The notes under the pieces: model-generated | What the model was told of the DNA's origin: nothing | Seen by the model: the letters and a program-made list of their open reading frames with translations, nothing else | Database searches by the model: none | Program-made: the position numbers and the translations under genes | Virus record (IMG/VR): IMGVR_UViG_3300050122_000263 | Span: 496,001 to 560,000 of that record | Strand: one strand, 5' to 3' | Length of the DNA stretch: 64,000 nucleotides | Part shown: in pieces, positions 24,925-59,555 of the stretch | Layout of the letters: each line of letters begins with the position of its first letter | Numbering within the stretch: the first letter of the stretch is position 1

Positions 24925-26355
24925 TTATGGGGCTATATAGACCAAGCTGTCGAAGCTGGTAGTTCTATCTCTCACATCCACCAGCTCTGTGACTATTTGG
25001 TGGGAACCTGGCATGTGAGTGAAAACAATAATGTCATATCCCAATTCTTTGCCTAACAGACATAGATCCCTGTCAAAACTATCTTCACTCGCGTAGAAAC
25101 CCAATAACTGCCCCATATAACGCTTGCGTTGTGGCAGACGAGCTATCTCCTCCTCTGTGAAAGATCTATTATAAAGCTGGAGTGGCCCACTGATCTTGTG
25201 TAACTTGTTATGACGATCCATCTCCTTAGTGTAAGCTGCCACTTCTAGAGGTGTCATCATCAGATCATCTGGCAGCCGTGGTAGCTGGCTCAGCTTCTTG
25301 CCGGCTGCGAAATCTCGGTAACCAAGACTGTAGGCTAGAAAGCTTTCATCAAATCCGTGAATAATGTGTTCCTCCTCGGATGGTGCTGTAACTCCTTCAA
25401 TATAGGTTTTGTGACGCCCCAACATAGCTTCCATCTGCAACATAGCGACCAGTTTAGTGCGAGCAATTAGAGCGCGCCGGAAAGCTAGGTAGGTGCTAGA
25501 CTCTGACTCCAAGTTCCCGGTTAGGGAACTAGGGGCTTCCCCAGACATATACGTCGGGGGAAGCTCCACATAATAAAAGGTGCCACAGAAACTTCCGCCA
25601 GATTGAGATGGACCATGATAGAGACCCCGACTCATACCTGCAGCATAACGGGTGACGGGAACCAGTTGCCATTCCATCCCATTCAACTCAGCCTTGAAAT
25701 AAATGTCTGTGGGAATGATCTGTGTAGAATTAATAACCGAAGCCCCTGGAGTGCGGAAAATAGACATATCGGTGACAGGGCGCTTGCTCCGCTTATATAC
25801 ACGGTCTGGCGCAAATAATAGCAAAGGCAGTGAATTAGCTGTCTCGCCAGCTTCTCGGATAAGTTCGGCTACAGTACAATAGCGCCATCTGGGCCACTGT
25901 CGCAAAGTGAGGCTCTCATCGCTATCTGGGTCACTTAGGTCAGGTAATGTGGGAGCAAATGTGTACCAGAACTTTATCTCCTCTCTTGTCAATCCATTGA
26001 GGCGATCCTCTAGATAGAGCGTATTGAGTTCGGCTATAGTGGTTACGCCTTCTCCATAGCTCGGTAAGTAATCGTTACTCTCCTCCTCGGTGGGAAGTTC
26101 TGGTAAGAAACCGGCTCTCACAAAGGCCACAGCATCGGGAATTGAGCGCACGTTAAACAATAGGCATTGTTTAGCATCGCTAAGTTGTTGAGCTAGCAGA
26201 GCTCGGATCTGCTCTGCAAAGGCTGGAATGTCTGTGATGTCTCCATAATAATGACGCCCCTCTGCATCAATGGTGCCGATGGGAATCAACGGTTTAGATG
26301 TCAGCTCCTCTTCTTCCTCCTCAAAAGAGACAGATTCATTGAAAGACTCTTGCAT
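24925..26355 (-). CDS. Paralog family A member 1 (PVTRY...GTFYY...GYD...QIVTE; putative ART-like fold)
   Basis: Clear colinear similarity to 36026-37132 and 47871-49058. Confidence 0.8.
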   Translation of the reverse strand: MQESFNESVSFEEEEEELTSKPLIPIGTIDAEGRHYYGDITDIPAFAEQIRALLAQQLSDAKQCLLFNVRSIPDAVAFVRAGFLPELPTEEESNDYLPSYGEGVTTIAELNTLYLEDRLNGLTREEIKFWYTFAPTLPDLSDPDSDESLTLRQWPRWRYCTVAELIREAGETANSLPLLLFAPDRVYKRSKRPVTDMSIFRTPGASVINSTQIIPTDIYFKAELNGMEWQLVPVTRYAAGMSRGLYHGPSQSGGSFCGTFYYVELPPTYMSGEAPSSLTGNLESESSTYLAFRRALIARTKLVAMLQMEAMLGRHKTYIEGVTAPSEEEHIIHGFDESFLAYSLGYRDFAAGKKLSQLPRLPDDLMMTPLEVAAYTKEMDRHNKLHKISGPLQLYNRSFTEEEIARLPQRKRYMGQLLGFYASEDSFDRDLCLLGKELGYDIIVFTHMPGSHQIVTELVDVRDRTTSFDSLVYIAP

Positions 26356-36025: not shown

Positions 36026-37132
36026 ATGGAGTGTAATCCAGAACAAACAGATGTTATTGTGTCTGAACAGACCACTGAGACAGTTTTACAGGTCACAGAT
36101 ATAGAGCAGTTTAAGCAAACTCAGAAACAGCTGGACGAATTGGGGAAATCTTCAATTATTGTCGAAGTTAAGTTGAAGGCACCCTGGAGAGAGTTTATTA
36201 AGGCCGGGTTTCTTCCACTAATCGGTCACGGGGAATTCACTGAATGTAGCGGTATGGCTCTACAAGCTTGCAATGTTGGATTAACTGCAAGAATGGCTCT
36301 AGGGTATTTGCTATCTGGCTATACTGAACCGGAAATGGATTTCTACATCGGAGATCATTGGCGTGAAGTGGCTGATTTCCAACAATGGGGTCGCTGGCAG
36401 TTCTGCGCGCTAGAAAGCTGGTATGCCCAAGCTATGACCGATTGCCAATCCCTCCCAATCATTCTGTATGGAAGGGCTGGGGATCTCTACACTAAATCTC
36501 AGCGGCCTCGTACTGATATGTCTCTCTTTCTACCATTGACCCTTTCTACACCCCCCTCTTACAAGCAGGAGGAAGATTGGCAGTTAGTTCCAGTCACTCG
36601 TTACGCTTCAGGAATGAGTAGAGGCCTCTTCCATGAGGAAGACAATACTAGGCAATTTGGTACTTATTACTACAAAGAAGAGGAATCAACTATCTTCTTG
36701 CGCTATAAGCGAGCTCTGATTGCCAAGAACAAATATGAAGCAGCTAAACAACTGGGCGTAGAAGCAGAGAGGTATTTGAACGGAGAGAAAACAGCCAAAG
36801 CTTGGTATCGAGGAGAAATTCCAACACCAGCCGATCTAATGATGACTCCGATAGAGATGTATGATTGCACTCTAACACAAGACAGGGATATCCTAGGAAA
36901 CTGTAACGAGCTCTGCAAGCAAATTTCCCAAGATAAGCGATATGCTGGTCTCTTCTTGGGTCTCTATGCTGCGGAGGATGATCTGGATGGAATTTTGTAT
37001 GATCGGGCTAAGAAGGCCGGTTACGATATAGTCATATTCTCAGCAATTGGCTCTCATCAAGTTGTTGAGGAAGTATTGGATGTACGACCTCGAGCAGAAT
37101 CCTTCTCTCATCTAGTCAGATGCTCAGAATAA
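36026..37132 (+). CDS. Paralog family A member 2 (putative ART-like)
   Basis: VPVTRYASGMSRGL...FGTYYYKEEES...GYDIVIFSAIGSHQVVEEVLDVR. Confidence 0.8.
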   Translation: MECNPEQTDVIVSEQTTETVLQVTDIEQFKQTQKQLDELGKSSIIVEVKLKAPWREFIKAGFLPLIGHGEFTECSGMALQACNVGLTARMALGYLLSGYTEPEMDFYIGDHWREVADFQQWGRWQFCALESWYAQAMTDCQSLPIILYGRAGDLYTKSQRPRTDMSLFLPLTLSTPPSYKQEEDWQLVPVTRYASGMSRGLFHEEDNTRQFGTYYYKEEESTIFLRYKRALIAKNKYEAAKQLGVEAERYLNGEKTAKAWYRGEIPTPADLMMTPIEMYDCTLTQDRDILGNCNELCKQISQDKRYAGLFLGLYAAEDDLDGILYDRAKKAGYDIVIFSAIGSHQVVEEVLDVRPRAESFSHLVRCSE

Positions 37133-37191
37133 ACGCCTAAGTGAGTAAAAAACTATTATCTCTAGGCAGAGATAATCGGTCCTTGTAAAGA

Positions 37192-37896
37192 ATGGAAGAT
37201 GCTGCTCGCAACCTTTCACAAGCCCCTCTATCTCCAGAGTGTCAGAAACAGCTGTGGGCCAGTGTCACTAATTTCTTACAATTACAAGCAGCCGCTGCCC
37301 TCAATATTCAGGGCAATGCCATATCTGGTCCTATCTATGGTAGTCGTTTGAATGAGGAATCTGAAATTATTCTAACTCAGCTAACCAAGCTTAATCTCTA
37401 TGGCTGCTTCACAACAGATTCTCAGCCATATCAGCGTTTCACTCTCTTTGAGGATCAGAACCAAGATGTCATTCAGCGTCCTTTTCTCATGTTCTGGACT
37501 AGAACTGCCTTAGCAGCCTCCTTTCTAGGTCGATTCCTTCAACTTCATCCCCAGGCTTTGATTAGTGTGACTCATAACGGGCAGATGGTGCCTGAGACAT
37601 ATGGAGTCAACAATTTCACTTTTGCTCAACATACTAACCCAACTACCAATGAGACAAATTATCTTGTTGCAGCTCACATGGTACGCCCGGTTAACGATCC
37701 TAATGCAGCTTGGCAAGAGAACTACAACACCACCTTCACACTCCATCAAAACATCTATGATGTTGAGAGGGCTAGCGTACAGAGTGTTGAGCCCGTCTCA
37801 CTCTTCATTGTGCTCAGCGCTGAGCAGTCCAACAGACTATTTGATGACTGCCTCAGGTCTATTATCTATGCAATTGGAGTGGAAGAAGGTGTATAA
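37192..37896 (+). CDS. Stand-alone MTHFR C-terminal (SAM-binding regulatory)/DUF6919-like domain, copy 1
   Basis: RLNEESEIILTQLTKLNLYGCFTTDSQPY...VIQRPFLMFW. Confidence 0.65.
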   Translation: MEDAARNLSQAPLSPECQKQLWASVTNFLQLQAAAALNIQGNAISGPIYGSRLNEESEIILTQLTKLNLYGCFTTDSQPYQRFTLFEDQNQDVIQRPFLMFWTRTALAASFLGRFLQLHPQALISVTHNGQMVPETYGVNNFTFAQHTNPTTNETNYLVAAHMVRPVNDPNAAWQENYNTTFTLHQNIYDVERASVQSVEPVSLFIVLSAEQSNRLFDDCLRSIIYAIGVEEGV

Positions 37897-37984
37897 CCTG
37901 AATTTAGGACTTATCTCCCAAGATAAATCTGGAGGAAATTATAAACTGTTTCACTTAAAAAGGTCATTTAATTGGTCAAACAAG

Positions 37985-39007
37985 ATGGCGAACAAGGAAC
38001 TGGCTTCTCTTATCACTGTGTTGAGCGAAGTGGCTGAAACTTATTCTAAGCAAGTGATTGAAACTGTGAAGGTTAATATTGATTGCATTAACAAGATCCG
38101 ATCGGCCATCTCAGTACTTGAGAAGCTTACCATTCCTGCCTCGGAAACCGGAACTCCGAAGCTAGAGCAGGCTGTGAAAGATGTTGAGCAGCCTCAGCCT
38201 CAACAGACCGAAGTTTGTGAAATTAAAGCAGAAGTTAAGGAATCACTGACAATCACCCCATCTACTACCCCAAGTCCTGTCATTGCTGTTGAAACTGTCG
38301 TGCCTGAAACTATCCCCGCTCATCCACCCTCTCCCGTCTGCAGTAGATATCACCAGTCTGATTTCGAGCGCTTCCTGCGCCAGCACGATCTACCTTCTAA
38401 ATTCATGGAGCAGTTCCTCAAAGCTGTCTGTGAGCATAAGGGCAAGCTGTACGGCAGCTACCTCATGCGGGCTATGATGCTGGTTACCATGCAACAGGCC
38501 CACAAGCCTAATTGGCTGGTTGATCCCCACACTGTTCGCTTCTGGTTCACCAGTGAAGAGGATAAAGCGGCAGCTTTCAAGGTTCTGTCGTGCGGACAAG
38601 ATTACCGTCTCCTTAAGAACATAGGAGACGCTGACAAGTATAACTTACACTTCATCAGTCGCAAGGGAGGTTTTAAGCTGCTGCCACTCACTGTCTATCT
38701 GGTGGTCTCTCCTGTCTTCCCGGAAAAGACCTTCCTACAAGCCATGGTGGTTTATGATTTCAAAGGTAGCATGGGATCCTACCCTCCCTTGGCTCCAGTT
38801 CTCAGAGATCTCATATTCCGCTTCAATGCGGGAGCTGGCTACATGAAACATGCTGAATTCATGCGCGCTCGTTGCAACTACAACGAGCGAGAAATCAAGG
38901 CTGCCCGGGATAGCGAACAGGAACAACTCACTCACGGCTTCGTCGTAGATCGCACCTTTATTGTGCGAGATGATGGCACTCTCACTACATTTGAGCCTCC
39001 CAAATAA
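37985..39007 (+). CDS. Degenerate NTase-fold paralog of 29947-31344
   Basis: Start at AAGATG 37985; the ORF-track extension overlaps the upstream gene. Coiled coil, then KGKLYGSYLMR...HTVRFWFTS without the catalytic Asp pair. Confidence 0.6.
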   Translation: MANKELASLITVLSEVAETYSKQVIETVKVNIDCINKIRSAISVLEKLTIPASETGTPKLEQAVKDVEQPQPQQTEVCEIKAEVKESLTITPSTTPSPVIAVETVVPETIPAHPPSPVCSRYHQSDFERFLRQHDLPSKFMEQFLKAVCEHKGKLYGSYLMRAMMLVTMQQAHKPNWLVDPHTVRFWFTSEEDKAAAFKVLSCGQDYRLLKNIGDADKYNLHFISRKGGFKLLPLTVYLVVSPVFPEKTFLQAMVVYDFKGSMGSYPPLAPVLRDLIFRFNAGAGYMKHAEFMRARCNYNEREIKAARDSEQEQLTHGFVVDRTFIVRDDGTLTTFEPPK

Positions 39008-39031
39008 TGACCGTTAACTAACACAAGTAAA

Positions 39032-39056
39032 TTAAAAACTCATAACTTATGAGTTT
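39032..39056 (+). terminator. 3' hairpin
   Basis: TTAA then AAACTCATAA-c-TTATGAGTTT. Confidence 0.65.
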
Positions 39057-39154
39057 CGACATAGATCGAGGTAAATAATGCTGAACTTGGCAGAGATAAT
39101 TGATAATCTGATTTGACAGCATTTCAGTGTTTTGCATGAAAGCTAACAGGAAAC

Positions 39155-40213
39155 ATGCAAGAACCGGTTATTGTAACAAGCGATCATGGACGAGGCCCAG
39201 CTAATGAGGGTCTCCAGCGTTTAGTGAGAGAAGAGGAGTTGCACGAGCACTTCAAGACTTTGTATGGAGAGATGGAGGCACAGCAGATAAGAGAGATGTG
39301 CTACAGTTTTGAGCCTGAAGCCAGTAAAACCCCACCTTACTACTGGGTCTTCCTAGAGCGTGGTTCAACAGAGTTGAACTCAGCCCTTACTCACTCCACG
39401 GGAGTGAGTTTAGAGCGTCGCTCGGAAGACATTCCAAGCATAGCCCCTGCTCACTCCACAGAGATGAGCTCGGATCATAGTTCAACAGAGTTAAACTCGA
39501 CTCCTCACCCTGAGGCGAATAAGGATCGCAGCACAATTTTCCATGAGGTTTTTCCCAAGCACTATCAGATCAGCTGGAAGGATGAGCCCCATGAATTGGA
39601 GACTGTCACCTGTTACCATACAGTGGCAACTATCACCAACAACTCTCTTCCAGCCACTCATGCTGCAATGACTGAGGCAGAGTACAGTGCTATTCTGCTC
39701 GGAGTTAAGAAGCACTTCATCAATGATGGCGTGGAAGAGATGTCTCAATCTCTCTACAGCAGGAGCAGTGGGCGCCATGTCACAGTTGATCTTCCCCATC
39801 GAGAAGCCATGTTCCGCGACTTCTTCGGCGACAACTACGAAATAATCTTCACACTGGAGAATAACATGATCGATGGACATCCGTTCCAGTATAACACCCT
39901 CCTGATTAGGCGCAAAGAAGGAGCAGATGCAGCTCTACCCATACGCCAAGAGTTCGCTGTTAAGACCGAGTTCCTGGGTTGGCTGCACAAGAAGCGAGCT
40001 GAAATGACGAGACTAGGCCGCTGCACCTTGACTATGTCTGGGGATCAAGCAGATGTCTTCTTAGTCATTAGCTTGGCTAGCCGAGACAAACTGGTGCATA
40101 CCGCTTTTGGTAAGCGCTGCCGCATAGAATGGGCTGAGGAGCAGAGAGTGCTGTATGGCCAGACCTACCATTACACTACCCTCTATGTGGCTATGCCCAT
40201 CACCGGCCGCTAA
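39155..40213 (+). CDS. Hypothetical protein with internal duplicated modules and a palindromic in-frame segment
   Basis: 352 aa; repeated F..xF.++Y.I.W...Y.T modules; STELNS occurs twice. Confidence 0.75.
   Translation: MQEPVIVTSDHGRGPANEGLQRLVREEELHEHFKTLYGEMEAQQIREMCYSFEPEASKTPPYYWVFLERGSTELNSALTHSTGVSLERRSEDIPSIAPAHSTEMSSDHSSTELNSTPHPEANKDRSTIFHEVFPKHYQISWKDEPHELETVTCYHTVATITNNSLPATHAAMTEAEYSAILLGVKKHFINDGVEEMSQSLYSRSSGRHVTVDLPHREAMFRDFFGDNYEIIFTLENNMIDGHPFQYNTLLIRRKEGADAALPIRQEFAVKTEFLGWLHKKRAEMTRLGRCTLTMSGDQADVFLVISLASRDKLVHTAFGKRCRIEWAEEQRVLYGQTYHYTTLYVAMPITGR
39363..39498. repeat. Cluster of DNA hairpins inside a CDS
   Basis: GTTCAAC-aga-GTTGAAC (39363-79), ACTCACTCC-acg-GGAGTGAGT (39389-409), and degenerate second copies at about 39449 and 39480. 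Confidence 0.75.
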
Positions 40214-40287
40214 TATGTTAAAAAGCCAAAATATATACCTAAATATGATAGGTATATCTACTTCATCAATCCTGTTAAAGTGAGGCT

Positions 40288-40890
40288 ATGCAAGCTGTTG
40301 TTTCAGACTATCAGAGCTGGTTGCAGCGTTATCAATCATTCTGCTCAATTCTGACCCCTGACTTCTCTATTGACGGTAACTTCTCTCTGGCACAGGGTGA
40401 CCTCGCACAGGTATTGTGTGAGATGTCACTAAACTCAGCTGAGTGGTTATGCTGTTTGTCCAGACATCTGAGGGCTTACCGCCTAGACATCTGCGATTAT
40501 ATCGTGCGGCAAACAGAAGGCATAAGCACTTCAAACCGGGGCAAGTTGGATAAAGTCACTGTCGATGATGGCAAAGCAGTTATAATGGAGAATCTGAGAC
40601 ATGATCTGGATCTAATTCATCGCTTATTGGCTGTAGTGCAAGCAATGGAGAGAGCTGGTACTATCACAGTATTTGGTTTGCCTATTAATTCCAGTTATCT
40701 AAACGCAGCAGCTGAGTTGCGACAGATTGCTCAAGATACAGTTTCAGAGCAATTGGCCCCAGATGAGGAGTCCGAGGAAGATGACAGATCAGTCAGATTT
40801 TCAACAGCTCAGCCTGAGCAGGGCAGATCTCATTTACCATTCTGTATCTTGGTTATTGCTATCGTAGCAGCCTCTTTTTATATGCATTGA
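40288..40890 (+). CDS. Hypothetical tail-anchored protein
   Basis: 200 aa, helical, with a C-terminal hydrophobic segment. Confidence 0.7.
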   Translation: MQAVVSDYQSWLQRYQSFCSILTPDFSIDGNFSLAQGDLAQVLCEMSLNSAEWLCCLSRHLRAYRLDICDYIVRQTEGISTSNRGKLDKVTVDDGKAVIMENLRHDLDLIHRLLAVVQAMERAGTITVFGLPINSSYLNAAAELRQIAQDTVSEQLAPDEESEEDDRSVRFSTAQPEQGRSHLPFCILVIAIVAASFYMH

Positions 40891-40956
40891 CTGCAAAAAC
40901 TCTTCAAAAATTGAGCTACACACTTCTCAGTGTAGAGTTTGCAAACACAAGCGGGA

Positions 40957-41496
40957 ATGAGTGGTACAGGCGATGAAGTTACTAATTCTAAATCAGAGGT
41001 AGTTCAAAGCAGTGACCCTGTAGCGGAGGCGGAAGTAGTGGTCAAACCAGCAGAGCCAACTATAACCCCAGCCCCAACCTCAATTCCAGCAGCATCTCAA
41101 CAAGAAACAATACAGCCTCAACAGCCGGCAGCTATAACCTCACAGTCCTCTCAAAAGGTAACTCAGCCCTCTAAACCTCAATCCAAACAAGCGACAGCGG
41201 CCAAGGCGCCTCAGAAACACTCAGCCAAAGTTGGCAAGCAGAAACAGAAAGAGCCCATCGATCCTTATACAGCAAATACCAATGATGTGATCAATCTAAC
41301 GCCTGAAGAAGTAGCTGATCTGTTACTGCGATTCAATGTGGAGAAAGCTCATGTACTTCCCTTCATTAAGGAGCGGATTAATGGGCTGGCTTTCCTGCTG
41401 CTGGAGAGTTATGAGCTCAATCACCTTAACTTGCCTCTAGGGCCGAGGAAAGTGATCTTCTACTTGATTCAGCAGATTCGCCAGCGCAATAGTTGA
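40957..41496 (+). CDS. SAM (sterile alpha motif) domain protein
   Basis: LTPEEVADLLLRFNV...FIKERINGLAFLLLESYELNHLNLPLGPRKVIFYLI; disordered P/Q/K-rich N-terminus. ATG at 40957. Confidence 0.85.
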   Translation: MSGTGDEVTNSKSEVVQSSDPVAEAEVVVKPAEPTITPAPTSIPAASQQETIQPQQPAAITSQSSQKVTQPSKPQSKQATAAKAPQKHSAKVGKQKQKEPIDPYTANTNDVINLTPEEVADLLLRFNVEKAHVLPFIKERINGLAFLLLESYELNHLNLPLGPRKVIFYLIQQIRQRNS

Positions 41497-41757
41497 TGGC
41501 TGAGATTAATAAAAACAATATAGGACTATGTTGTTTCACTTGATAAGCTCGACTTAACACTGAGGTATTGTGGCATGATCATTAAAATGCTCTGTGTTAA
41601 CTGCCCTATTCTTCAGGCATAGGTTGTGAATTCTGATTTACAATGCTCTAACGCCTGTGTGAGCGCGCTCAAAGGCTCAGATTAAATAATCACAGTTGTA
41701 GATTGATTTATTGGGTTACTCATTAGTGGTAATAAACACAACTTCACACAGTTAGAT

Positions 41758-42573
41758 ATGCAAGGAACAGATGAGCAAGTAGCACACAACACCATAAGTG
41801 GTGATGAGGATTTATCTCAAGATCAAACACCCGAAGGCTCTGAAGAAGAGGAAGTAGTAGATGTGTTTTCTCTAGCCTCAGCTCCAAAGGGATCGGACGA
41901 TAATGCAACGGCTAAAATCGTGTCCCACGCATCTATCTCCTATCAAGCAGGGGAAGATTTGTGGCAGACAATAGCCAACTTCGAGCAATTGCAAGCTGTT
42001 TTTGCTCTCAACATCCAGGGAAATGTATTGGAGAGCCCATCCCATATTGGTCGCCTAGATGAGGAAACTGAGGTTATTATACCTCAGCTGACTAAGCTTA
42101 ATCTATATGGCTGTGTTACTGTCAACTCTCAACCCTATGGTAAGTTTGTTTCACCACTGACCAACAGTTGGGCTATCCAACGGCCTTATCTCTGTTGTTG
42201 GTTGCGCTCTGAGGAGGCCTTCGCTTTCATCGCCACTTTACGAGAGATAGATGAAAGATATGCCGTCACATGTGTTGACGATGAAGTCATGACTCCGGAG
42301 ACCTTCGGCCTGAAGCACTTCATCCTGGACAACGGTGCTATAGCAGGGTATAAGACACTGACTATCACAGGGGAAGGCGAGGTTTGGGTTGAGGATTACC
42401 ATCATTGCCTTCCTATGACGGAGAACAATTATGTAGATGAGCAAATACGACTTAACATAGTTGGTGAGAAGATGACCTTGATCACAATTGTCAGTGATCA
42501 ACAGAACAATGATATCTTCGATGACTGTGTTAAGGCCATGGCCAAGGTGGTCTATCACAGGGAGTGGCCCTAA
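41758..42573 (+). CDS. Stand-alone MTHFR C-terminal/DUF6919-like domain, copy 2
   Basis: RLDEETEVIIPQLTKLNLYGCVTVNSQPY...AIQRPYLCCW; paralog of 37192-37896. Confidence 0.65.
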   Translation: MQGTDEQVAHNTISGDEDLSQDQTPEGSEEEEVVDVFSLASAPKGSDDNATAKIVSHASISYQAGEDLWQTIANFEQLQAVFALNIQGNVLESPSHIGRLDEETEVIIPQLTKLNLYGCVTVNSQPYGKFVSPLTNSWAIQRPYLCCWLRSEEAFAFIATLREIDERYAVTCVDDEVMTPETFGLKHFILDNGAIAGYKTLTITGEGEVWVEDYHHCLPMTENNYVDEQIRLNIVGEKMTLITIVSDQQNNDIFDDCVKAMAKVVYHREWP

Positions 42574-42720
42574 TTAATAGATAGTTAAAAAGGGTGTGTA
42601 AAAATTTCCCATATGGATGGGAAATCTTGCATAAGAGTATAAGGGATAATAGTGGCAGAATGTGAATAACACTAACAGAATTATAAACGGAGAGTTTCAA
42701 GAAATTTAGGCAGAGCAAAG

Positions 42721-45426
42721 ATGCAAGCTGCCACAGCTCCTGAGCATGTCACACTCAATTTCGCCGGTCAGCAGTTGAAACTGCCTCTCCCCATTGCTCA
42801 ACAAGCAGGCACTCTAAAGCAGCTACTCGAATTCAACCGCAAGTACGGAGCTCAAAATTACAACTTCACCCTTGCTTTAGAGGAGCTACCGGAGGATATC
42901 AGAAATAATCCGACCGTGCAAGAGCAGCTCTTAATTCGCCTACGCCAGATTTTCTTTGATGAAGCGTTCTTTGTGCCAGAAGACCCGGCCACATTACTGA
43001 ATCTGTTAGCCTTGATGCAACGACTGGAGCTCACCAAGTCTCCATATCTGGAGAACATAGCTACCAGATACTTCTCGTTGTTACCATTTGGCGAGTTGCC
43101 ACCCCAAGAGACGCTGCTCTGGATATTCACACATCAACCCATTCCAGTTGCTCGGTTCTTGAAGCAACTCTCTAACAGACTGCATCAGGAGGATGGTTTC
43201 AACACAGCCATCATACGCTATTACCAAGAGCTGATTCGAGCTGATCAGCAGATCGCTTATGCGCTACAACCTCATAGCTATCCTTTTGTCCATCCAGACA
43301 GGGTAGACCGGATCTCACCAAATCTCTTCCTACTGAATCCATTAGATAATACCCGTCCCTTGATATCAGATTATATGCAAGCTGGACTGGCTGTAGCCAT
43401 CCATCGTAAGAGCTTCCTGGTGCCACCACCTCAATGGATTGAGAATGTGGAGATCAAGTTTCCAACTCAGGCTGTTTTTATCGGAAGGTTGGTACAGCTC
43501 TTCCCCGGTTTGATCAAATTTGTGGAGGATATAGCGAGAGAAGTCACGGAGATGTTTCCACCTGTTGATAACCGACCAGTAGCGGGCTGTCTACTAGCAG
43601 GGCCTTTTCTACCAATTTGTCTGGACGACTGGTTATTTCAGCGTTTACGTCACAAAGCCTCGATCGAGATTCTGATCTATGGTAGTAGCCCTGCAGTGCG
43701 AGAACGAGTCTTTGACTTAATACTAGGTTGGTTCCGCGAATACTTCGATGATCAGGAAGGAGATGTGACCACCAGATATTACGAGGATAGTTGGGTTTTC
43801 GTCAATCCCACTCAGCGTGTCAGGTTACGACCTCTCTTATTCAACACAGCTATGGCGGCCCTGTCACAACAACGCCTCTCACACTCACAAATTGGTTACG
43901 ACATCCATTATGGACTGCTTGCTACTCCCCTCTTCTCATTATATTGGCGCCGACGTGAATCTATTATCGCCTGGTATGGAGTCAGAGGTGAGGAGTTGAT
44001 AGGAGCAGCTTATTTCGGCTTCGCCATTAAGCTGATCGCTCCATATGCTCATATACTGAGGGAATCAGCTATCCATATTTTCGAAGATGGTCGCCCCACT
44101 GCCGAGGTCTACTATGAAAGCACTCCAAATTTCACCCTAATTAAAGGAACCCCTAATCTTGTCTTAGAAAATGCAGGGAAGAGACCAGTTCTGGCAGTCG
44201 ATTATGCTGGGCCAAGAGCTTCCCCTCGTTTGGAAGCATTTCCTCAGGACTTTTTGCCGGGGGACAGGGGTAGTTATGGCCTTATAACCATATTTGGAGG
44301 AGTGAGTTCTATTGTAGAAACCACGCCTTGGGAGACCGAAGTCTTGTTCAGAAGAGATTTCCGTGATAATATGCATGTTAACTTCGAAGTTAACGCTTTG
44401 TTTGCCAATCCAAGTATCAGATCAGGTCTCAACCCCGGGGCTGATACTACAATTGAAGGTGTTATGTTCACACCGCGGAGCTTCTATCATGCTCACCGCG
44501 ATGTTGGTACTGATCTACTTTGGGGAAGCCCTATTGAACTAGCAGCCGGGCCTGGCTCCTTTGGTAGCTATTTCTGGTTACGTCAATGTTCTTTCAAACG
44601 CTCCCCTGTCTACCGCTTCCCTCGTGGCATCATTCCACAAGAGGGACATTACCGGACCTTCGATGCCCTACGAGGTTATGTCGTTGAGAATTCTCGTCCA
44701 CCCATAGCGGACACATTTCAACTGATAGACGAAAATGTGGTGAAATATCCTATCCCACTCAGAGATGCTGATCAAGGATACATAGTGTTTACAGAGCTGC
44801 CGCAACCGGCTGATCCCAGACACCTTGAGTTACTGAAGCCTGGTAAAGCAGAGTGGCCAATCACTGTCACTGCTGTGCTACAACTCAGGACTTTTGGCGG
44901 GCAACAACGACCAGTTACTCCAGAACTCTATCGTGAATCTCTACAGCTTAATGAGGAGCAGATTGCAGCACTGCCTCTAGTGACTGCTGAGCAACTGCCC
45001 GCCCTACTTTACCAGGCTGATCCTCAGTTCAGAGCCCAAGCAGAAGCATATCGTGAGAATGCTGCAACGATCCAAGAGCTGAAGGAAGATGAAGAGATCG
45101 ACGATGAAAACGAAGAGGAGCCAGGTTATATACCTAGACTTGCAGAGGGTGAGATGGAGAACTTTAAACAAGTCTACCGAAATCGAATCGCTGAACTGAC
45201 TCTGGACTTTGAACGTGAAGCTCAACAGCTCCCCCTCTATGTTCGGGTAACAATAGATGTAATGGTTGATAGATGGTTCTTCATTGATGGGGCCAACTGG
45301 CTGATGCCTTTTGATGAGTTGTTTAACAACCAGTTCAATTGCTCTATCAGGATAGACTCAGCTGATGAGAATGGTGAAGAGAGACGTTATCCGTACATTA
45401 TGCGAGGTTACAAAGTGTATCCCTAG
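42721..45426 (+). CDS. Large protein with BTB/Skp1-like N-terminus and degenerate NTase-like segment
   Basis: VTLNFAGQQLKLPLPIAQQAGTLKQLL resembles a BTB/Skp1 start; GCLLAGPF...SIEILIYG resembles the NTase head without the Asp residues. Confidence 0.5.
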   Translation: MQAATAPEHVTLNFAGQQLKLPLPIAQQAGTLKQLLEFNRKYGAQNYNFTLALEELPEDIRNNPTVQEQLLIRLRQIFFDEAFFVPEDPATLLNLLALMQRLELTKSPYLENIATRYFSLLPFGELPPQETLLWIFTHQPIPVARFLKQLSNRLHQEDGFNTAIIRYYQELIRADQQIAYALQPHSYPFVHPDRVDRISPNLFLLNPLDNTRPLISDYMQAGLAVAIHRKSFLVPPPQWIENVEIKFPTQAVFIGRLVQLFPGLIKFVEDIAREVTEMFPPVDNRPVAGCLLAGPFLPICLDDWLFQRLRHKASIEILIYGSSPAVRERVFDLILGWFREYFDDQEGDVTTRYYEDSWVFVNPTQRVRLRPLLFNTAMAALSQQRLSHSQIGYDIHYGLLATPLFSLYWRRRESIIAWYGVRGEELIGAAYFGFAIKLIAPYAHILRESAIHIFEDGRPTAEVYYESTPNFTLIKGTPNLVLENAGKRPVLAVDYAGPRASPRLEAFPQDFLPGDRGSYGLITIFGGVSSIVETTPWETEVLFRRDFRDNMHVNFEVNALFANPSIRSGLNPGADTTIEGVMFTPRSFYHAHRDVGTDLLWGSPIELAAGPGSFGSYFWLRQCSFKRSPVYRFPRGIIPQEGHYRTFDALRGYVVENSRPPIADTFQLIDENVVKYPIPLRDADQGYIVFTELPQPADPRHLELLKPGKAEWPITVTAVLQLRTFGGQQRPVTPELYRESLQLNEEQIAALPLVTAEQLPALLYQADPQFRAQAEAYRENAATIQELKEDEEIDDENEEEPGYIPRLAEGEMENFKQVYRNRIAELTLDFEREAQQLPLYVRVTIDVMVDRWFFIDGANWLMPFDELFNNQFNCSIRIDSADENGEERRYPYIMRGYKVYP

Positions 45427-45554: not shown

Positions 45555-46754
45555 ATGCAAGGTCAGACACCTATACTTCCCGGTGCATTTGGCAATCGAG
45601 CCATAGAAGGAGTGCCATATGTTGAGAAGATGTCAACAACTGGCTTTGGTGTTGAACCTCCAACTCCATTAGAGGAGGTATGGCTGCATCGACAACAGGT
45701 TGCTACAGCTCAACAGGAGTTAGAACAGGCACTGCAGCGTGCTCAGCGTGCTGGAGCCACTCCCATTCAACTGACTCAAAATCAACCTTACTTTGCAAGG
45801 ATGTCTGCAACCACCTTTGGAGTTGAACCGCCAACTGCATTAGAGGCTCTTCAGATAAAGAGAGATCGACTTGCGCGAGTACAACAGTACTTGGTACAGG
45901 CGCAACAACGTGCAGCACAATATCTGGCAACACAACCTCAGCCCTTCCAGCCCCAACGTGCCGTTCAACCATTCCAACCCACTCAACAAGTCACACGGCC
46001 CTTCCGTCCCGCTCAGATCGCTCCACCACAACCATTTCAGCCAACTCAGCAGCCATTTGCCTTGACTCAGAAACAGATTTTCCGTGCACCCCGCTCACCA
46101 CGTCAACCCACCCAAGGACCATTCAAGCCCATTCCTCTGCCTACTCAACCTTTTCAGCCCATTCCTCTGCCTACTCAACCTTTTCAGCCCATTCCTCTGC
46201 CTACTCAACCTTTTCAGCCCATTCCTCTGCCTACTCAACCTATTAGGCCTCTTAGCCCAAGGGCTGTGCTAACTGGATCTCCTCCACGCTCACCGCCAAG
46301 ATCTCCAATCTTCCAGCTTCAACTTCAGCAGCCAACACAACAGATTCAGCGATTCACTCAGCAGCCCCGGGCCCTTCAACCCGTTGTTCAAGCTCAACAA
46401 TTCACTCAAGCTCAACAACTTCCCCCTAGGCGTGTAATTTTGGAGGAGATCTCCTGGACTGTGGGTGATCGTCCTGAACAAGCCAGATTGGCTGTGGGAG
46501 CTCCCACCATTATTCTGACTCTGAGTAGAGATGTCTTTGGTGTTGCAGATTATTCCGTCCGTATTGACGAGCCCGTGCCTGGCAACGGCATTCCAGTCAG
46601 TGCCATTTTTGAAGGCATTAACCGCATTCCTGCCTTGCAGAACCCTGTTGACCGTGGCGATCGTGTCTTTTTCGAAGGAATTGAACAATTTTTCCCCCAG
46701 GGACCTCAGGTTATCCCGGGAGTGGAATATTACGAGGTCCAACTTGGCAACTAG
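45555..46754 (+). CDS. Pro/Gln-rich repeat protein with C-terminal family D (DUF6699-like) domain
   Basis: 57-aa N-terminal duplication (PY..+MS.T.FGVEPPT.LE), QPFQP repeats, C-terminal VRIDEP..GIPVSAIF...GDRVFFEGI...YEVQLG. Confidence 0.75.
   Translation: MQGQTPILPGAFGNRAIEGVPYVEKMSTTGFGVEPPTPLEEVWLHRQQVATAQQELEQALQRAQRAGATPIQLTQNQPYFARMSATTFGVEPPTALEALQIKRDRLARVQQYLVQAQQRAAQYLATQPQPFQPQRAVQPFQPTQQVTRPFRPAQIAPPQPFQPTQQPFALTQKQIFRAPRSPRQPTQGPFKPIPLPTQPFQPIPLPTQPFQPIPLPTQPFQPIPLPTQPIRPLSPRAVLTGSPPRSPPRSPIFQLQLQQPTQQIQRFTQQPRALQPVVQAQQFTQAQQLPPRRVILEEISWTVGDRPEQARLAVGAPTIILTLSRDVFGVADYSVRIDEPVPGNGIPVSAIFEGINRIPALQNPVDRGDRVFFEGIEQFFPQGPQVIPGVEYYEVQLGN
46126..46241 (+). repeat. Perfect 30-bp coding tandem repeat, about 3.9 copies
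   Basis: Unit AGCCCATTCCTCTGCCTACTCAACCTTTTC, encoding (QPIPLPTQPF)n. Confidence 0.95.
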
Positions 46755-46792
46755 GATTCTGACCTCCATCTATAGAGTCTTACAGAAACAAC

Positions 46793-46820
46793 TAAAAACT
46801 CATTATCAATGAGTTTTTAA
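46793..46820. terminator. Bidirectional 3' hairpin
   Basis: T-AAAAACTCATT-atc-AATGAGTTTTT-AA between convergent genes. Confidence 0.7.
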
Positions 46821-46836
46821 CATCTATCCTCTATGG

Positions 46837-47870: not shown

Positions 47871-49058
47871 TTAAGCGATGTACAGTAAGCACCGGAAGCT
47901 CTCGTCTCGTGGCCTCGCATCCAAAACCTCTGTCACTATTTGGTGAGACCCCACCATATGAGTCAGAATGAGAATATGCAGCCCAGCCTCCTCGGCCATA
48001 ACCGCGAGGCTTTGGTCGAATTCATCTTCCTGCGCAAATAAGCCCAGCAGCATGCCGGCATAGCGAGCTGTGGTTGCAATACGTGGCACTAATTGCCGCT
48101 TGCTCTCAGGGAAGTTAACTCCTTTGTATGTCTGGATCTGCTCTGGTGTCATAATCAAATCCTCAGGCATTCCAACCATGTGTTTCTCATGTGCCATCTC
48201 ATCATCCAGCTTGTCCATGGCTGTCTCCTTGTTGCGGAAGGTTCTGGCTCGCTGATAGAGTAGGAAGGTGGTCGATTCTGGCTCGTAATAATAGAATGTC
48301 CCTTTGAAGTCGTCTACATTCTCATTAAAATAAAGACCTCGGTTCAGAGCGCTGGCATAGCGAGTGACAGGGATACAGAAGCATGTTTCAGCTTGTGGTC
48401 CGTTCAAAGTCACAATGTATTCGTATTGATTGATTTGAGTGAGTTGCTCTCGCTTGGCTGTTAGTGAGTTGATAGTTCGGAACATAGCCATATCGTTTCT
48501 AGGTCGCCGACTGCCTGTGTAAACAAGCTCAGGGGCATACATTAACAGAGGTAGTGAGTCAGCCGTTCTTAGAGCATGTTGCCGCCAATATTCAACAGTG
48601 GCGAAGATCCAAACCTTACTACAAAGGGCCAACTTCTTAGGATCCCCATACCAGAAAATGTTCTCCTCCTCCGTCATGCCATGCAGAATAAGCCCTTCAA
48701 TCACATCACTGTTCTTTTCCGGTAGGAAACCAGCCCTGGCCATCTCCAGATTATTATCTACATAGAAGTTGGTTGTGTGACAGCGTATCATCACCAGTTT
48801 GTGTTGCTGCATAAGAGCCCCAACCTCCGTGAAGAGCCTTTGCACATTGAGCTGTGCAAAGAGAACAGGGTAACAAAAGGTATCGTCCTGCCGGATAAGG
48901 TGACTGTCGACATCATAAGCAACAGTCAAATCAATGGTACCGATGCTGGGCGATGTGGCATCCACCACGATTTCGCTCATTGTGTGAGGTTCTGTGGTCA
49001 CAATGTTGAGAAATAAGGCAGCTGCAGTTCGAGCTCGTTTGTTAGACATATTTTTCAT
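47871..49058 (-). CDS. Paralog family A member 3 (putative ART-like)
   Basis: IPVTRYASALNRGLY...FKGTFYYYEPES...THMVGSHQIVTEVLDAR. Confidence 0.8.
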   Translation of the reverse strand: MKNMSNKRARTAAALFLNIVTTEPHTMSEIVVDATSPSIGTIDLTVAYDVDSHLIRQDDTFCYPVLFAQLNVQRLFTEVGALMQQHKLVMIRCHTTNFYVDNNLEMARAGFLPEKNSDVIEGLILHGMTEEENIFWYGDPKKLALCSKVWIFATVEYWRQHALRTADSLPLLMYAPELVYTGSRRPRNDMAMFRTINSLTAKREQLTQINQYEYIVTLNGPQAETCFCIPVTRYASALNRGLYFNENVDDFKGTFYYYEPESTTFLLYQRARTFRNKETAMDKLDDEMAHEKHMVGMPEDLIMTPEQIQTYKGVNFPESKRQLVPRIATTARYAGMLLGLFAQEDEFDQSLAVMAEEAGLHILILTHMVGSHQIVTEVLDARPRDESFRCLLYIA

Positions 49059-55462: not shown

Positions 55463-56971
55463 TTAATAGAGATAAGGGATGAGACGGTAGGGAACTGTCT
55501 CACAGTATTTGTGCCAAGAGAGGCCATACTTCTTGGCACAACGGGCTTCATCACGGTAACAACGGATGACTAGCAAGATGATCATGTAGATACAGTAGAA
55601 ATAAGGGATGATGCTGTCTGAGCCACAGGCTAAGCAATAGGCTGTTGACAGGATAATATCCCCTGTGTAGTTCATGTGACGGGCTACGCCCCATAGACCC
55701 TCAACCAGGAGTTTGCTCTCGTGGCAGCCAGACTCAGTTGTGTAGCTACACAGTACATGCTGCTGTCTGGCCTGTTCCTGCGGAGTTGAACGTCTGAAAC
55801 AGTCCTTCTGGCTATTGGCGACTCGGAAGATGACGTAACCCAGCAGTCCCAACAGTAGGATGGAAAAGAACTTAGAGTTACCGAGCGTGACTGGATGGTA
55901 GCTGAGATACTGAGCCTGTATAGTATAGGTGAAGGGCAACCAGACACAGTCTCCCCAAGCTAGCACCCAACCAAAGTGGTCATGGGCGATATCAATAGTG
56001 CGCAGATACCAATTCTCATTGAAGAAAAAGTCAAGCACATAGATAGCCTGTAATATATTAACCAGAACCATGGAGTCTGAGACATAACCGTAGCGCTTAG
56101 CTTGGGCTGCTGCAAAGGAGATGTTGATGAGAGTCCAGGCGATAATACCTGGTCGCCCGTTGAAAAAGAGCTTGAAATCCAAGTTGCCAATACGCGGGTT
56201 AAACTCGACGCCCATAATGAAATCATACACAAAGCTGCCTGAGTATTTATTATCACGTGGATGAGTTGGGGCATAATGGGCTTTTAGGTAAGACATAATG
56301 GACAACAAAAGACCGGTGATATTAGCTACAAGGAAGAGAGCCATCCAATTGTCCGCGATCCAAGTCACAGACAAGATACTGTAATAGCAGAGCATGACGA
56401 AGGTGATGTGAGTGATGAGCCAAGCCTGCAGCCCGTTAATATTGTAATAGAGCAGATGACCGGCAGGAGTTAACTGCCCCTGTTTGTGACCACCAACATA
56501 GCTAGGCGTCAGCTTATGTAAGCCATCAGGCAGCACAGCCAATAGAGTTTGCCAGGCAAACCAGCCAATTAGGGTGATTGTGACTGAGCCTATAGTATCT
56601 CTGATGTGAACGATGTCCAGGTAGCTGAGATTGTCTGAATTGGAGAGTTGGCTGTTCTCTGTAACAGCTACGAGGTGATCACCTCGCGACGATCCTGGGC
56701 TCAGGCCCAGGATCGGTACGAAATTCAACAGATTCTCGGCGAATGGCAGGAGATGATCATTTACACAGAGCATGATAAGACACAGGGCCAAGCCAGGCAC
56801 CCAAATGAACATAAGTAATACACCGCGTACAGTCAGCTTGCTTGGGCTATCGCAGCGGCCCCACGTCTTCTTCCCTATAGCATTAGTATTGCCTGTGGCT
56901 GGGGTAATATTGATATTCGAGCGAGAAGTGAAGTCTCCAGCACAGTCGCTATATGGAACATTAATGGACAT
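55463..56971 (-). CDS. DHCR7: 7-dehydrocholesterol (sterol delta-7) reductase, ERG4/ERG24 family
   Basis: GVEFNPR...DFKLFFNGRPGIIAWTLIN...DFFFNENWYLRTIDIAHDHFGWVLAWGDCVWLP...WGVARHMNYTGD...RDEARCAKKYG...VPYRLIP. The RTIDIxHDHFGW signature is DHCR7-type. First ATG at 56971. Confidence 0.95.
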   Translation of the reverse strand: MSINVPYSDCAGDFTSRSNINITPATGNTNAIGKKTWGRCDSPSKLTVRGVLLMFIWVPGLALCLIMLCVNDHLLPFAENLLNFVPILGLSPGSSRGDHLVAVTENSQLSNSDNLSYLDIVHIRDTIGSVTITLIGWFAWQTLLAVLPDGLHKLTPSYVGGHKQGQLTPAGHLLYYNINGLQAWLITHITFVMLCYYSILSVTWIADNWMALFLVANITGLLLSIMSYLKAHYAPTHPRDNKYSGSFVYDFIMGVEFNPRIGNLDFKLFFNGRPGIIAWTLINISFAAAQAKRYGYVSDSMVLVNILQAIYVLDFFFNENWYLRTIDIAHDHFGWVLAWGDCVWLPFTYTIQAQYLSYHPVTLGNSKFFSILLLGLLGYVIFRVANSQKDCFRRSTPQEQARQQHVLCSYTTESGCHESKLLVEGLWGVARHMNYTGDIILSTAYCLACGSDSIIPYFYCIYMIILLVIRCYRDEARCAKKYGLSWHKYCETVPYRLIPYLY

Positions 56972-57124
56972 TGCAGCTGTTTGCAACTTTCTTACGATCT
57001 CTCCACTACAATTGGCTGATCAGTTCTCGCTTCTTTCGCTGTTGTCATAGAATTAGCACTATGATTATGACTGATATAAAGTTATATCAGTCAGATTAAA
57101 GTCGTACTAGAAACAACCTAGATA

Positions 57125-57955: not shown

Positions 57956-59395
57956 TTAATTGTAAGTGTATTTCTCGAGCTTCCAACCGCTAACCAACAG
58001 CTCTGAGCTCTGCAACATGATGTTAGGAAGTGCTATTTTCGGCTCTTCCCGGGGCAGAAATGAGCCATAGATATGAACTGGATTGTTGCGAAGATACGGC
58101 TCATTTTCCTCTTGAGGTAATAGCTGTAAAGTTCCATAATCCCCATCATCGATTCTATATATTTTAGGATCTGGACACCATGATGATGTTACTTGTAATA
58201 TATCACTAGGTCTCTCGATAACTCTTACCCTATTATCCCAACATCGCAGATGGTGGGAGAGAGCCGTACAACCACCAATATTAGGAGGCATCAATTGAGG
58301 TAGAGTACCAACCATAACATATAACGGGCGCTCATGATACTCAGGCTTTTCAGGGAGTGGAAGATTGAGATATGTCACCTGAGCCTCCTCTTCTGCCTTA
58401 CGGACCGACAGGTTACGTATGACTAGCTCTGGTTGATCATCAAGCCAACCAAAGATTATGTTCATATCGAGTTGCACTCTATTGCTCTCCCAGGCGAGAC
58501 GCTGTTCATCATACATGATGCGGACTGGCAACTGACACCATCCATTCCAAAAATTTTGACTTATCTGTTGGCATGTCTTACAAAGACGCCTGAAGCGAGC
58601 AAGCTCGTGTATAGAAAGGTAGCCGAGGATCTCAGCGATGATAGGTTTGAGCAACAACATCCAGAGCTCATTTCGAGCATTCAGTTGATTGCGTAGATAA
58701 TATCTTGCAGTCCATCCCTCAGGCGTAGCTTGGGTATCATTACATGTGAAATTGGGAAGTTGTAGCAATTCTTCAACACATGGGGTAAGATCAGCATGTA
58801 TAACTCGCATGGCAAAACTAGGTACATTGCAAGACCTCCCGGTAAAAAGGGTCTTAATTGGAATAGTTGCATCGATATCCCCTTCTGTATACATTTTCAC
58901 TATCTGAACAGGCTCTGTCTTGGTTATCATCTTTACCACTCTTATTTGATTAACGGTGATAGAGTCGCGAGTTACACGACATTGATGATATGTTTGTATA
59001 AAATCATCAGTTATCACGGTTTCATAGCGCTGTAACCCCGCACGATAGAATTGAGGAAGGGTACCCTCAATGACCGACAGATTATGCGCTTTATCATTGA
59101 AGATGTCCATATTCCAGTAGCGCTTGATAAGCTCCATTTTGTTCGGGCTCCAACCATAGACAAGCAGAGTAGTGTCATAATACAACCAGTTAAAACTGGG
59201 AATTGTGAGCCAATAATAAATGCGGACGGGAAGAATCTGCCATTGCTGCCATAAGGTCTGAGCCTGTTGGCAGAACCATTTACATGTTTTTCTTAGATTA
59301 GCTAGATGGTATGGCCCAAGTTGTGACAGCAGATGTTGAACAGTCTTCTCCTCAAAGTTGGCCCATAACAGAGGAATGATTATCCCTGCGTCCAT
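57956..59395 (-). CDS. Tandemly duplicated F-box-like protein
   Basis: LLSQLGPYHLANLRKTCKWF...WQILPVRIYY and ILGYLSIHELARFRRLCKTC...WCQLPVRIMY. First ATG at 59395. Confidence 0.7.
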   Translation of the reverse strand: MDAGIIIPLLWANFEEKTVQHLLSQLGPYHLANLRKTCKWFCQQAQTLWQQWQILPVRIYYWLTIPSFNWLYYDTTLLVYGWSPNKMELIKRYWNMDIFNDKAHNLSVIEGTLPQFYRAGLQRYETVITDDFIQTYHQCRVTRDSITVNQIRVVKMITKTEPVQIVKMYTEGDIDATIPIKTLFTGRSCNVPSFAMRVIHADLTPCVEELLQLPNFTCNDTQATPEGWTARYYLRNQLNARNELWMLLLKPIIAEILGYLSIHELARFRRLCKTCQQISQNFWNGWCQLPVRIMYDEQRLAWESNRVQLDMNIIFGWLDDQPELVIRNLSVRKAEEEAQVTYLNLPLPEKPEYHERPLYVMVGTLPQLMPPNIGGCTALSHHLRCWDNRVRVIERPSDILQVTSSWCPDPKIYRIDDGDYGTLQLLPQEENEPYLRNNPVHIYGSFLPREEPKIALPNIMLQSSELLVSGWKLEKYTYN

Positions 59396-59555
59396 CACAA
59401 CTTTCACAACACTTCGTTCACAACATGTTAATCATTGTCCTCTACTCAACACATTTATCTACCTACAAATAGAGTCAAACTTAAACAGGAGACTTAATCA
59501 ATCGATACTTCATAACATTACCTATTGCGAAGATACGCCATATATGGTGCATTTT

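Follow-up and report, generated by a model that had tools for sequence, protein, structure and literature searches.

Two genes, P0001 and P0002, located in a 64,000-nucleotide stretch of the IMG/VR virus record IMGVR_UViG_3300050122_000263 (positions 496001-560000 of the 582-kb record, peat metagenome; the whole stretch is called the window below), and a third gene of the same record, P0003, encode stand-alone homologs of MTHFR's regulatory domain, which binds S-adenosylmethionine (SAM). The homology is established by the profile, fold and template modelling (TM) score matches presented below, and the three proteins belong to the DUF6919 branch of the superfamily. Judged from the residues kept in their putative ligand pocket, the trio would, on balance, be non-catalytic binders of SAM, S-adenosylhomocysteine (SAH) or a close adenosyl analogue, which act as ligand-dependent switches or binders towards a partner; this functional reading is held with slightly more confidence than doubt.

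P0001 (234 aa, window 37192..37896, plus strand) and P0002 (271 aa, window 41758..42573, plus strand) are intact open reading frames (ORFs). Both had been pointed out in a previous reading made from the letters of the DNA (the sequence-only reading), and the peptides quoted there for the ORFs at 37192 and 41758 are present at these coordinates. That reading counted two homologs, and both are real paralogs; the genome, however, holds three, as the gene of P0003 (229 aa) lies outside the window, about 21 kb before it, at record positions 474958-475647 on the minus strand. No copies beyond P0001, P0002 and P0003 were detected in the 582-kb record. The sequences of P0001 and P0002 are 34% identical over 221 residues (E 4e-47), P0003 and P0002 are clear homologs (E about 1e-40), and the paralog identities across the trio are 34-36%. 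The domain fills each of the three proteins and is not fused to a catalytic domain. In line with the former statement that no catalytic TIM barrel is attached or nearby, the MTHFR catalytic domain (PF02219) gave no match anywhere in the 582-kb record.

The family assignment by sequence was based on the Pfam gathering cut-off, which is 27 bits for both DUF6919 (PF21897) and MTHFR_C (PF21895). P0002 scored 31.0 bits with DUF6919 (E 3.5e-7; 31.2 bits in the genome scan) and passes the cut-off, so the earlier guess that these proteins may correspond to DUF6919 was correct. The scores of P0001 and P0003 with the same model, 24.4 bits (E 3.7e-5) and 23.6 bits, respectively, were below the cut-off. 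With MTHFR_C, P0002 and its two paralogs resulted in 12.8, 11.4 and 10.9 bits, all below the cut-off. When the profile of the trio was searched against 1.84 billion representative proteins, 88 relatives were obtained at E<=1e-3, nearly all of them stand-alone proteins of 150-350 aa. The nearest non-self relative had an E value of 9e-20, compared with about 1e-110 inside the trio. Eighty relatives were aligned and scanned, and 76 of these matched DUF6919 and 24 matched MTHFR_C.

The relation to MTHFR itself was reached by deeper profiles. The 80-sequence profile matched in the PDB the regulatory domains of Chaetomium (8uy1/8uy2) and human MTHFR (8qa4/6fcx) with E values from 6.9e-17 to 1.3e-15. 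The MTHFR entries of the PDB were found only with the 80- and 12-sequence profiles; the PDB searches with single-sequence and 3-sequence profiles gave no match, and a word-index search with P0002 returned only P0002 itself and one paralog. The identity to MTHFR regulatory domains is 12-18%.

AlphaFold2 models were built from the 80-sequence alignment. The model of P0001 had a predicted local distance difference test (pLDDT) value of 87.6 and a predicted TM score (pTM) of 0.85, and that of P0002 had a pLDDT of 81 with a core above 90. The models show two side-by-side antiparallel beta-sheets together with helices and are superposable on the MTHFR regulatory domain. The folded domain of P0002 comprises residues 61-269 (window 41938..42564, plus strand), with two N-terminal helices and the two-sheet core behind them; the two helices are the counterpart of the MTHFR linker segments which follow the conserved GRW motif. 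The domain is preceded by an acidic N-terminal extension (EGSEEEEVVD..., residues 1-60, window 41758..41937, plus strand), which is predicted to be disordered: the pLDDT values are 44-56 over residues 1-50 and 65 over residues 51-60, with no secondary structure. In the paralog alignment this extension is found in P0002 only and is missing from P0001 and P0003. P0002 and P0003 both start with MQG.

In the Foldseek comparison with the PDB, which the sequence-only reading had proposed as a check of the fold, 13 MTHFR chains were the only significant matches of both models. The E values of the MTHFR chains were 1.3e-10 to 5.7e-7 with P0001 (TMq 0.62-0.66) and 1.5e-9 to 4e-7 with P0002, and the next fold followed at 0.013 and 0.07, respectively. 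The VIA-align superpositions on MTHFR gave Z scores of 16.6-18.9 over 192-201 residues, compared with 7.9 for the next fold. The best values of P0002 were obtained with 8uy2_B (Z 18.9, 196 residues aligned, 4.3 Å) and 8qa4_A (Z 18.6, 192 residues aligned, 3.0 Å), in which residues 58-269 of P0002 were paired with residues 365-588 of Chaetomium MTHFR and residues 63-266 with residues 415-644 of human MTHFR. The ESM Atlas model of P0002 had a TM of 0.80 (normalised by the representative) over 181 residues with a representative of a bacterial DUF6919 cluster, and a TM of 0.6 (query-normalised) with full-length eukaryotic MTHFRs. A homodimer prediction of P0001 with SAM riding along scored 0.15 against a mark of 0.32, which counts neither way.

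In human MTHFR, the SAH or SAM molecule is sandwiched between N456-T464 and T481-Q485; the adenine is bound by T481 and S484, and the ribose by E463 and T464 (PMC5995969, PMC11018872, PMC8040968). E463 is also linked to the SAM sulphonium through a salt bridge, and the E463Q/D substitutions abolish the binding. Q509, which bridges the methionyl groups, forms the floor of the pocket together with Q485 (PMC5995969, PMC11018872, PMC8040968). The homocysteine end is surrounded by T560 and T573 and by the linker residues P348, W349 and A368 (PMC5995969, PMC11018872, PMC8040968).

The conserved ligand-site blocks of the viral proteins, RLNEESE...NLYGCFTTDSQP...IQRPFL in P0001 (residues 52-99, window 37345..37488, plus strand) and RLDEETE...NLYGCVTVNSQP...IQRPYL in P0002 (residues 99-145, window 42052..42192, plus strand), align with residues 459-486 and Q509 of human MTHFR. 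The human segment quoted in the sequence-only reading is genuine: it matches residues 459-486 and 509-513 (QKAYL) of the PDB chain 8qa4_A, the numbering of which agrees with the published residue numbers. The alignment had been described as free of gaps, and this holds for the block of 28 residues, where human 459-486 pairs with P0002 99-126 and P0001 52-79. It does not hold for the stretch between SQP and Q509, which is 8 residues shorter in the viral proteins than in human MTHFR. All the site residues listed in that reading have equivalents, given here in the order P0002/P0001: E463 corresponds to E103/E56, T464 to T104/S57, N475 to N115/N68, G478 to G118/G71, T481 to T121/T74, S484 to S124/S77, Q485 to Q125/Q78, P486 to P126/P79 and Q509 to Q141/Q95.

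All three paralogs retain the equivalents of E463, T464 (S/T), T481, S484, Q485, P486 and Q509, and these seven positions are the best-conserved columns of the family, as determined with 83 relatives. Among the relatives covering each column, glutamate occupies the E463 position in 77/82, serine or threonine the T464 position in 82/82 and threonine the T481 position in 77/82. The S484 column holds serine in 71/83, glutamine and proline are found in 78/83 each at Q485 and P486, and Q509 is matched by glutamine in 68/78. The first helix contains a conserved tryptophan (W69 in P0002; present in 58/64 relatives), which is aligned with that of the Chaetomium 'RERWG' and presumably corresponds to human W389 of F384PNGRW389. 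As far as the alignments indicate, only the adenine/ribose half of the pocket together with Q509 is demonstrably kept.

Taken with the fold, this conservation is consistent with the view that the conserved pocket of each protein binds a single SAM/SAH-type adenosyl ligand and that the protein has no catalytic activity of its own. The occupancy of the pocket would reposition the N-terminal helices, which as the counterpart of the mobile MTHFR linker are the likely moving part, and the moved helices would alter how the protein interacts with a partner, which the virus or the host would provide in trans. If present in many copies, the proteins would also buffer the free ligand.

Several results weigh against the reading of the trio as ligand-dependent adenosyl binders. 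The DUF6919 match covers model positions 3-95 of 183, the N-terminal half only, and no member of the DUF6919 family has a tested function. At the methionine end of the pocket, the two registers available for the equivalents of T560 and T573 disagree. In the register based on hairpin length, T573 falls on the T of 'W.EDY.TS', which is T in P0001 and P0003 and H216 in P0002, and T560 falls on a position where the closest relatives have Q, the wider family varies and the trio has K/M/L. In the HMMER register, the tryptophan region pairs with human F582/W583, and T573 lies inside an insertion missing from the viral proteins. Nothing in the viral proteins corresponds to the linker residues P348, W349 and A368, as these proteins begin only beyond this portion of the linker. 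No conserved neighbour pointing to a partner was found around P0001 and P0002 or on the contigs of their relatives. No SAM synthetase, SAH hydrolase, N6/N4 or C5 DNA methyltransferase was found in the record, the completeness of which is only about 61% according to CheckV. Among the RNA runs searched for expression, none held the locus.

Alternatively, the pocket would accommodate a different adenosine-containing ligand, for example a nucleoside, nucleotide or signalling molecule, and the proteins would sense or sequester that compound. Only the adenine/ribose side and Q509 are demonstrably kept, the T560/T573 equivalents are uncertain or replaced and the linker residues which cap the homocysteine are missing. 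The kept E463, however, is the residue which salt-bridges the SAM sulphonium, the kept Q509 bridges the methionyl groups, and the authors of the DUF6919 family favour SAM (PMC11701544); a ligand of another kind is given a low probability. The involvement of a cryptic SAM-dependent methyltransferase of unusual fold is considered very unlikely. Such an enzyme would distantly resemble the archaeal structures 2dvk and 2it3, which we take to be SAM-dependent methyltransferases of the TYW3/Taw3 class. These were the second-tier fold matches of P0002 (model residues about 73-267; Z 7.9 and 7.1, respectively), and an Atlas feature match to a TYW3 cluster (0.84) was also obtained. Z scores of 7-8 correspond, however, to the stated background level of VIA-align. 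Moreover, the TYW3 hidden Markov model (PF02676) had no match in the genome at E<=10, TYW3 is absent from the Pfam and PDB profile matches of these proteins, and catalysis is not a property of the MTHFR regulatory domain, which is their nearest characterised relative. The second-tier matches may hint at a remote connection of this fold with TYW3, although they do not exceed background.

The roles suggested in the sequence-only reading, a SAM sponge, a dominant-negative regulator of MTHFR and the blunting of SAM-dependent defences, are possible and speculative. A sponge would be an abundant protein which sequesters SAM or SAH and thereby starves SAM-dependent host processes, by analogy with the SAM-degrading enzymes of phages. 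The kept SAM-site residues would suit this role, three copies could raise the dose, and the fold has relatives in jumbo phages and in phage-dominated Atlas clusters (see below). However, SAM is an abundant metabolite which would be costly to sequester stoichiometrically, and the 34-36% identity of the paralogs suggests divergent roles and not a dose effect. To our knowledge, there is no SAM-dependent antiviral system in the protist hosts of giant viruses, which also weighs against sequestration, and counter-defence of this kind appears unlikely. Still more doubtful is a partner of host MTHFR which, by pairing of the regulatory domains or by competition for SAM, lifts or imposes the feedback inhibition and redirects one-carbon units during infection. 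Eukaryotic MTHFR dimerises only via its regulatory domains (PMC5995969, PMC13001107), the viral proteins share the fold of that domain (Z 17-19), and the virus infects a eukaryote as judged from its NCLDV (nucleocytoplasmic large DNA virus) capsid, F-box and sterol reductase genes. The identity of only 12-18% to MTHFR regulatory domains speaks against such pairing. In addition, the family is present also in bacteria and phages, and since bacterial MTHFR has no regulatory domain (PMC5995969), pairing with host MTHFR cannot be the ancestral function.

A maximum-likelihood tree was calculated from 36 rows, each with a coverage of at least 65% of the domain. P0001, P0002 and P0003 formed one clade with support of 99/94, and the three copies therefore arose by duplication inside this viral lineage. 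The nearest metagenomic relatives lie on contigs with the appearance of giant viruses. An NCLDV capsid gene is present on one of these contigs, and others encode a protein with a PARP_regulatory (poxvirus poly(A)-polymerase regulatory-subunit) domain, a SET-domain protein, an NAD-dependent ligase and F-box genes. The fold search among models of viral proteins returned Pithovirus LCPAC201, LCPAC401, LCPAC302 and LCPAC304, Harvfovirus, EsV-1 (ORF 229), Tupanvirus, Faunusvirus and Marseillevirus LCMAC103; the matches of Pithovirus LCPAC401, Faunusvirus and Marseillevirus LCMAC103 already bear the UniProt label 'DUF6919 domain-containing protein'. Weaker fold matches were obtained with the jumbo phages Erwinia phage Kwan, PhiPA3 and Bacillus phage G, and phage-dominated clusters were present among the fold relatives in the Atlas. 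No match was obtained when 50,697 phage records were searched by tblastn. The profile matches included stand-alone DUF6919 proteins from fungi, those of Lophiotrema nucula (KAF2110289.1) and Cercospora zeina (KAM3424155.1).

The virus is a member of a deep, uncultured lineage of Nucleocytoviricota from peat. The record, which has a G+C content of 46.6%, carries outside the window an NCLDV major capsid protein gene at 261782-263257. The best relatives of the capsid protein are 43% identical and all metagenomic, and some of them are located on contigs of 1.1-1.6 Mb. One of these relatives is labelled 'Divergent major capsid protein [uncultured virus]', a name presumably applied to pithovirus-like lineages. 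In the window, a homolog of the ERG4/ERG24 sterol reductase family (55463-56986, minus strand; Pfam E 2.4e-100), a possible auxiliary gene for lipid metabolism, and two F-box domain proteins recognised by Pfam (2972-4291 and 57956-59407, both on the minus strand) were found. The NCLDV capsid, the F-box proteins and the sterol reductase together indicate a giant virus of a eukaryote. F-box proteins are typical of giant viruses which manipulate host ubiquitin ligases. In IMG/VR, the record is listed as a 'provirus' excised from a contig of 620 kb.

Identical DNA is present in several peat metagenomes. As contigs from three further peat metagenomes are letter-identical at the locus, there is no natural variation from which selection could be read. 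The pattern scans of IMG/VR detected only one additional contig, which came from the same metagenome and was 100% identical. Inside the gene at window 39155-40213, stretches of 35-40 nt within 39409-39474 recur with 5-6 mismatches on unrelated peat contigs, probably because the segment is of low complexity or is a short piece shared between them.

P0001, P0002 and P0003 are ordinary, intact transcription units. A perfect hairpin with a 9-bp stem (window 42604..42625, plus strand) is located 30 nt past the stop codon of P0002 and is probably a signal for the formation of the 3' end of the transcript. A perfect hairpin of at least 9 bp was also found 3' of P0003, and the stem of the hairpin after P0001 is only 6 bp. 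In a record-wide census of genes of at least 150 aa (n=380), a perfect stem of at least 9 bp within 100 nt past the stop codon was detected in 57% of the genes, compared with 1% at control positions inside coding sequence; a further example from this census lies at window 37156-37175. The hairpin rule of the record resembles the 3'-end hairpins of mimiviruses.

The surroundings of P0001 and P0002 are rich in multi-copy ORFan families, and no Pfam domain was found in the scans of ten neighbouring proteins. The gene directly upstream of P0001 (window 36026-37132, plus strand) is one of five members of an ORFan family of 370-480 aa in which no Pfam domain was found; the other members are located at window 24925-26355 and 47871-49058, both on the minus strand, and at record 41108-42310 and 45640-46836. 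The gene directly downstream of P0002 (window 42721-45426, plus strand) is one of at least 11 copies in the record of another ORFan family, of about 900 aa and likewise with no Pfam domain. The mutual identity of the copies is 28-35%, and others are found at record 568854-577133 (three in tandem), 398283-400994, 456489-459083 and elsewhere. A third family, of about 200 aa with a hydrophobic C-terminal tail and apparently tail-anchored, is represented at window 40288-40890 on the plus strand and at record 476658-477290, 478088-478699 and 481665-482240, all on the minus strand. P0002 and P0003 are each located about 1 kb downstream of a member of this family with one gene between. This arrangement is a weak hint that the pairs are remnants of a duplicated module, and such families are common in this genome.

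Among SAM-binding folds, the MTHFR regulatory domain is a distinct one, and its origin is under discussion. The present locus and its 88 relatives show that stand-alone versions also occur across giant viruses and fungi, and probably in jumbo phages, and that in one giant virus the gene has multiplied to three diverged copies in which the adenosyl-binding residues are retained. As small, soluble-looking proteins of a single domain, they offer a handle on the ligand specificity of the family, and they make it conceivable that the methylation potential of the host is sensed or manipulated by large DNA viruses. It is improbable that the stand-alone domains are working SAM/SAH-responsive switches acting in trans on host or viral targets and at the same time represent a virus-borne lineage which bridges bacterial DUF6919 and the MTHFR regulatory domain. 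If true, this would mark a route of the allosteric module between bacteria, viruses and eukaryotes and, in its strongest form, would amount to a portable viral 'methylation-potential sensor' which rewires the one-carbon metabolism of the host.

Compared with the C-terminal regulatory domain of eukaryotic MTHFR (PF21895; PDB 6fcx, 8qa4-6, 8uy1-2), the viral proteins have in common the fold and the site-1 residues E463, T464, T481, S484, Q485 and Q509. Unlike the eukaryotic enzyme, they have neither the catalytic TIM barrel nor the N-terminal linker, as their ORFs begin just before the domain; the Y403YLF406 plug is not recognisable in them, and the loop between SQP and Q509 is shorter. According to the published view, the MTHFR regulatory domain is derived from bacterial DUF6919 (PMC11701544, PMC13001107). 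DUF6919 (PF21897) was described as a stand-alone domain from bacteria only, and its authors favour the inference of a SAM site (PMC11701544). Like the bacterial DUF6919 proteins, the viral ones are stand-alone, about 200 aa long and predicted to adopt the same two-sheet fold, and they carry the same motif, E-[ST]...N..G..T..SQP...Q. In contrast to the published family, the viral set has three paralogs in one genome, P0002 bears the acidic extension of 60 residues predicted to be disordered, and P0001 and P0003 score under the family cut-off.

The same motif is found in the fungal stand-alone DUF6919 proteins of L. nucula and C. zeina and in the stand-alone proteins of EsV-1 (EsV-1-229), Tupanvirus deep ocean (an ORFan), Harvfovirus and Pithovirus LCPAC201, all of which are uncharacterised. 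These fungal and giant-virus proteins are more distant from the trio than the members of the trio are from each other. No paper dealing with giant-virus DUF6919 or MTHFR-like domains emerged from the literature search. The family, its relation to MTHFR and its automatic annotation in giant viruses are already known, and since the family is thus on record in giant viruses and its function is not established, the advance is incremental. The expansion to three copies in one virus and the breadth of the giant-virus membership revealed by the profile search are new.

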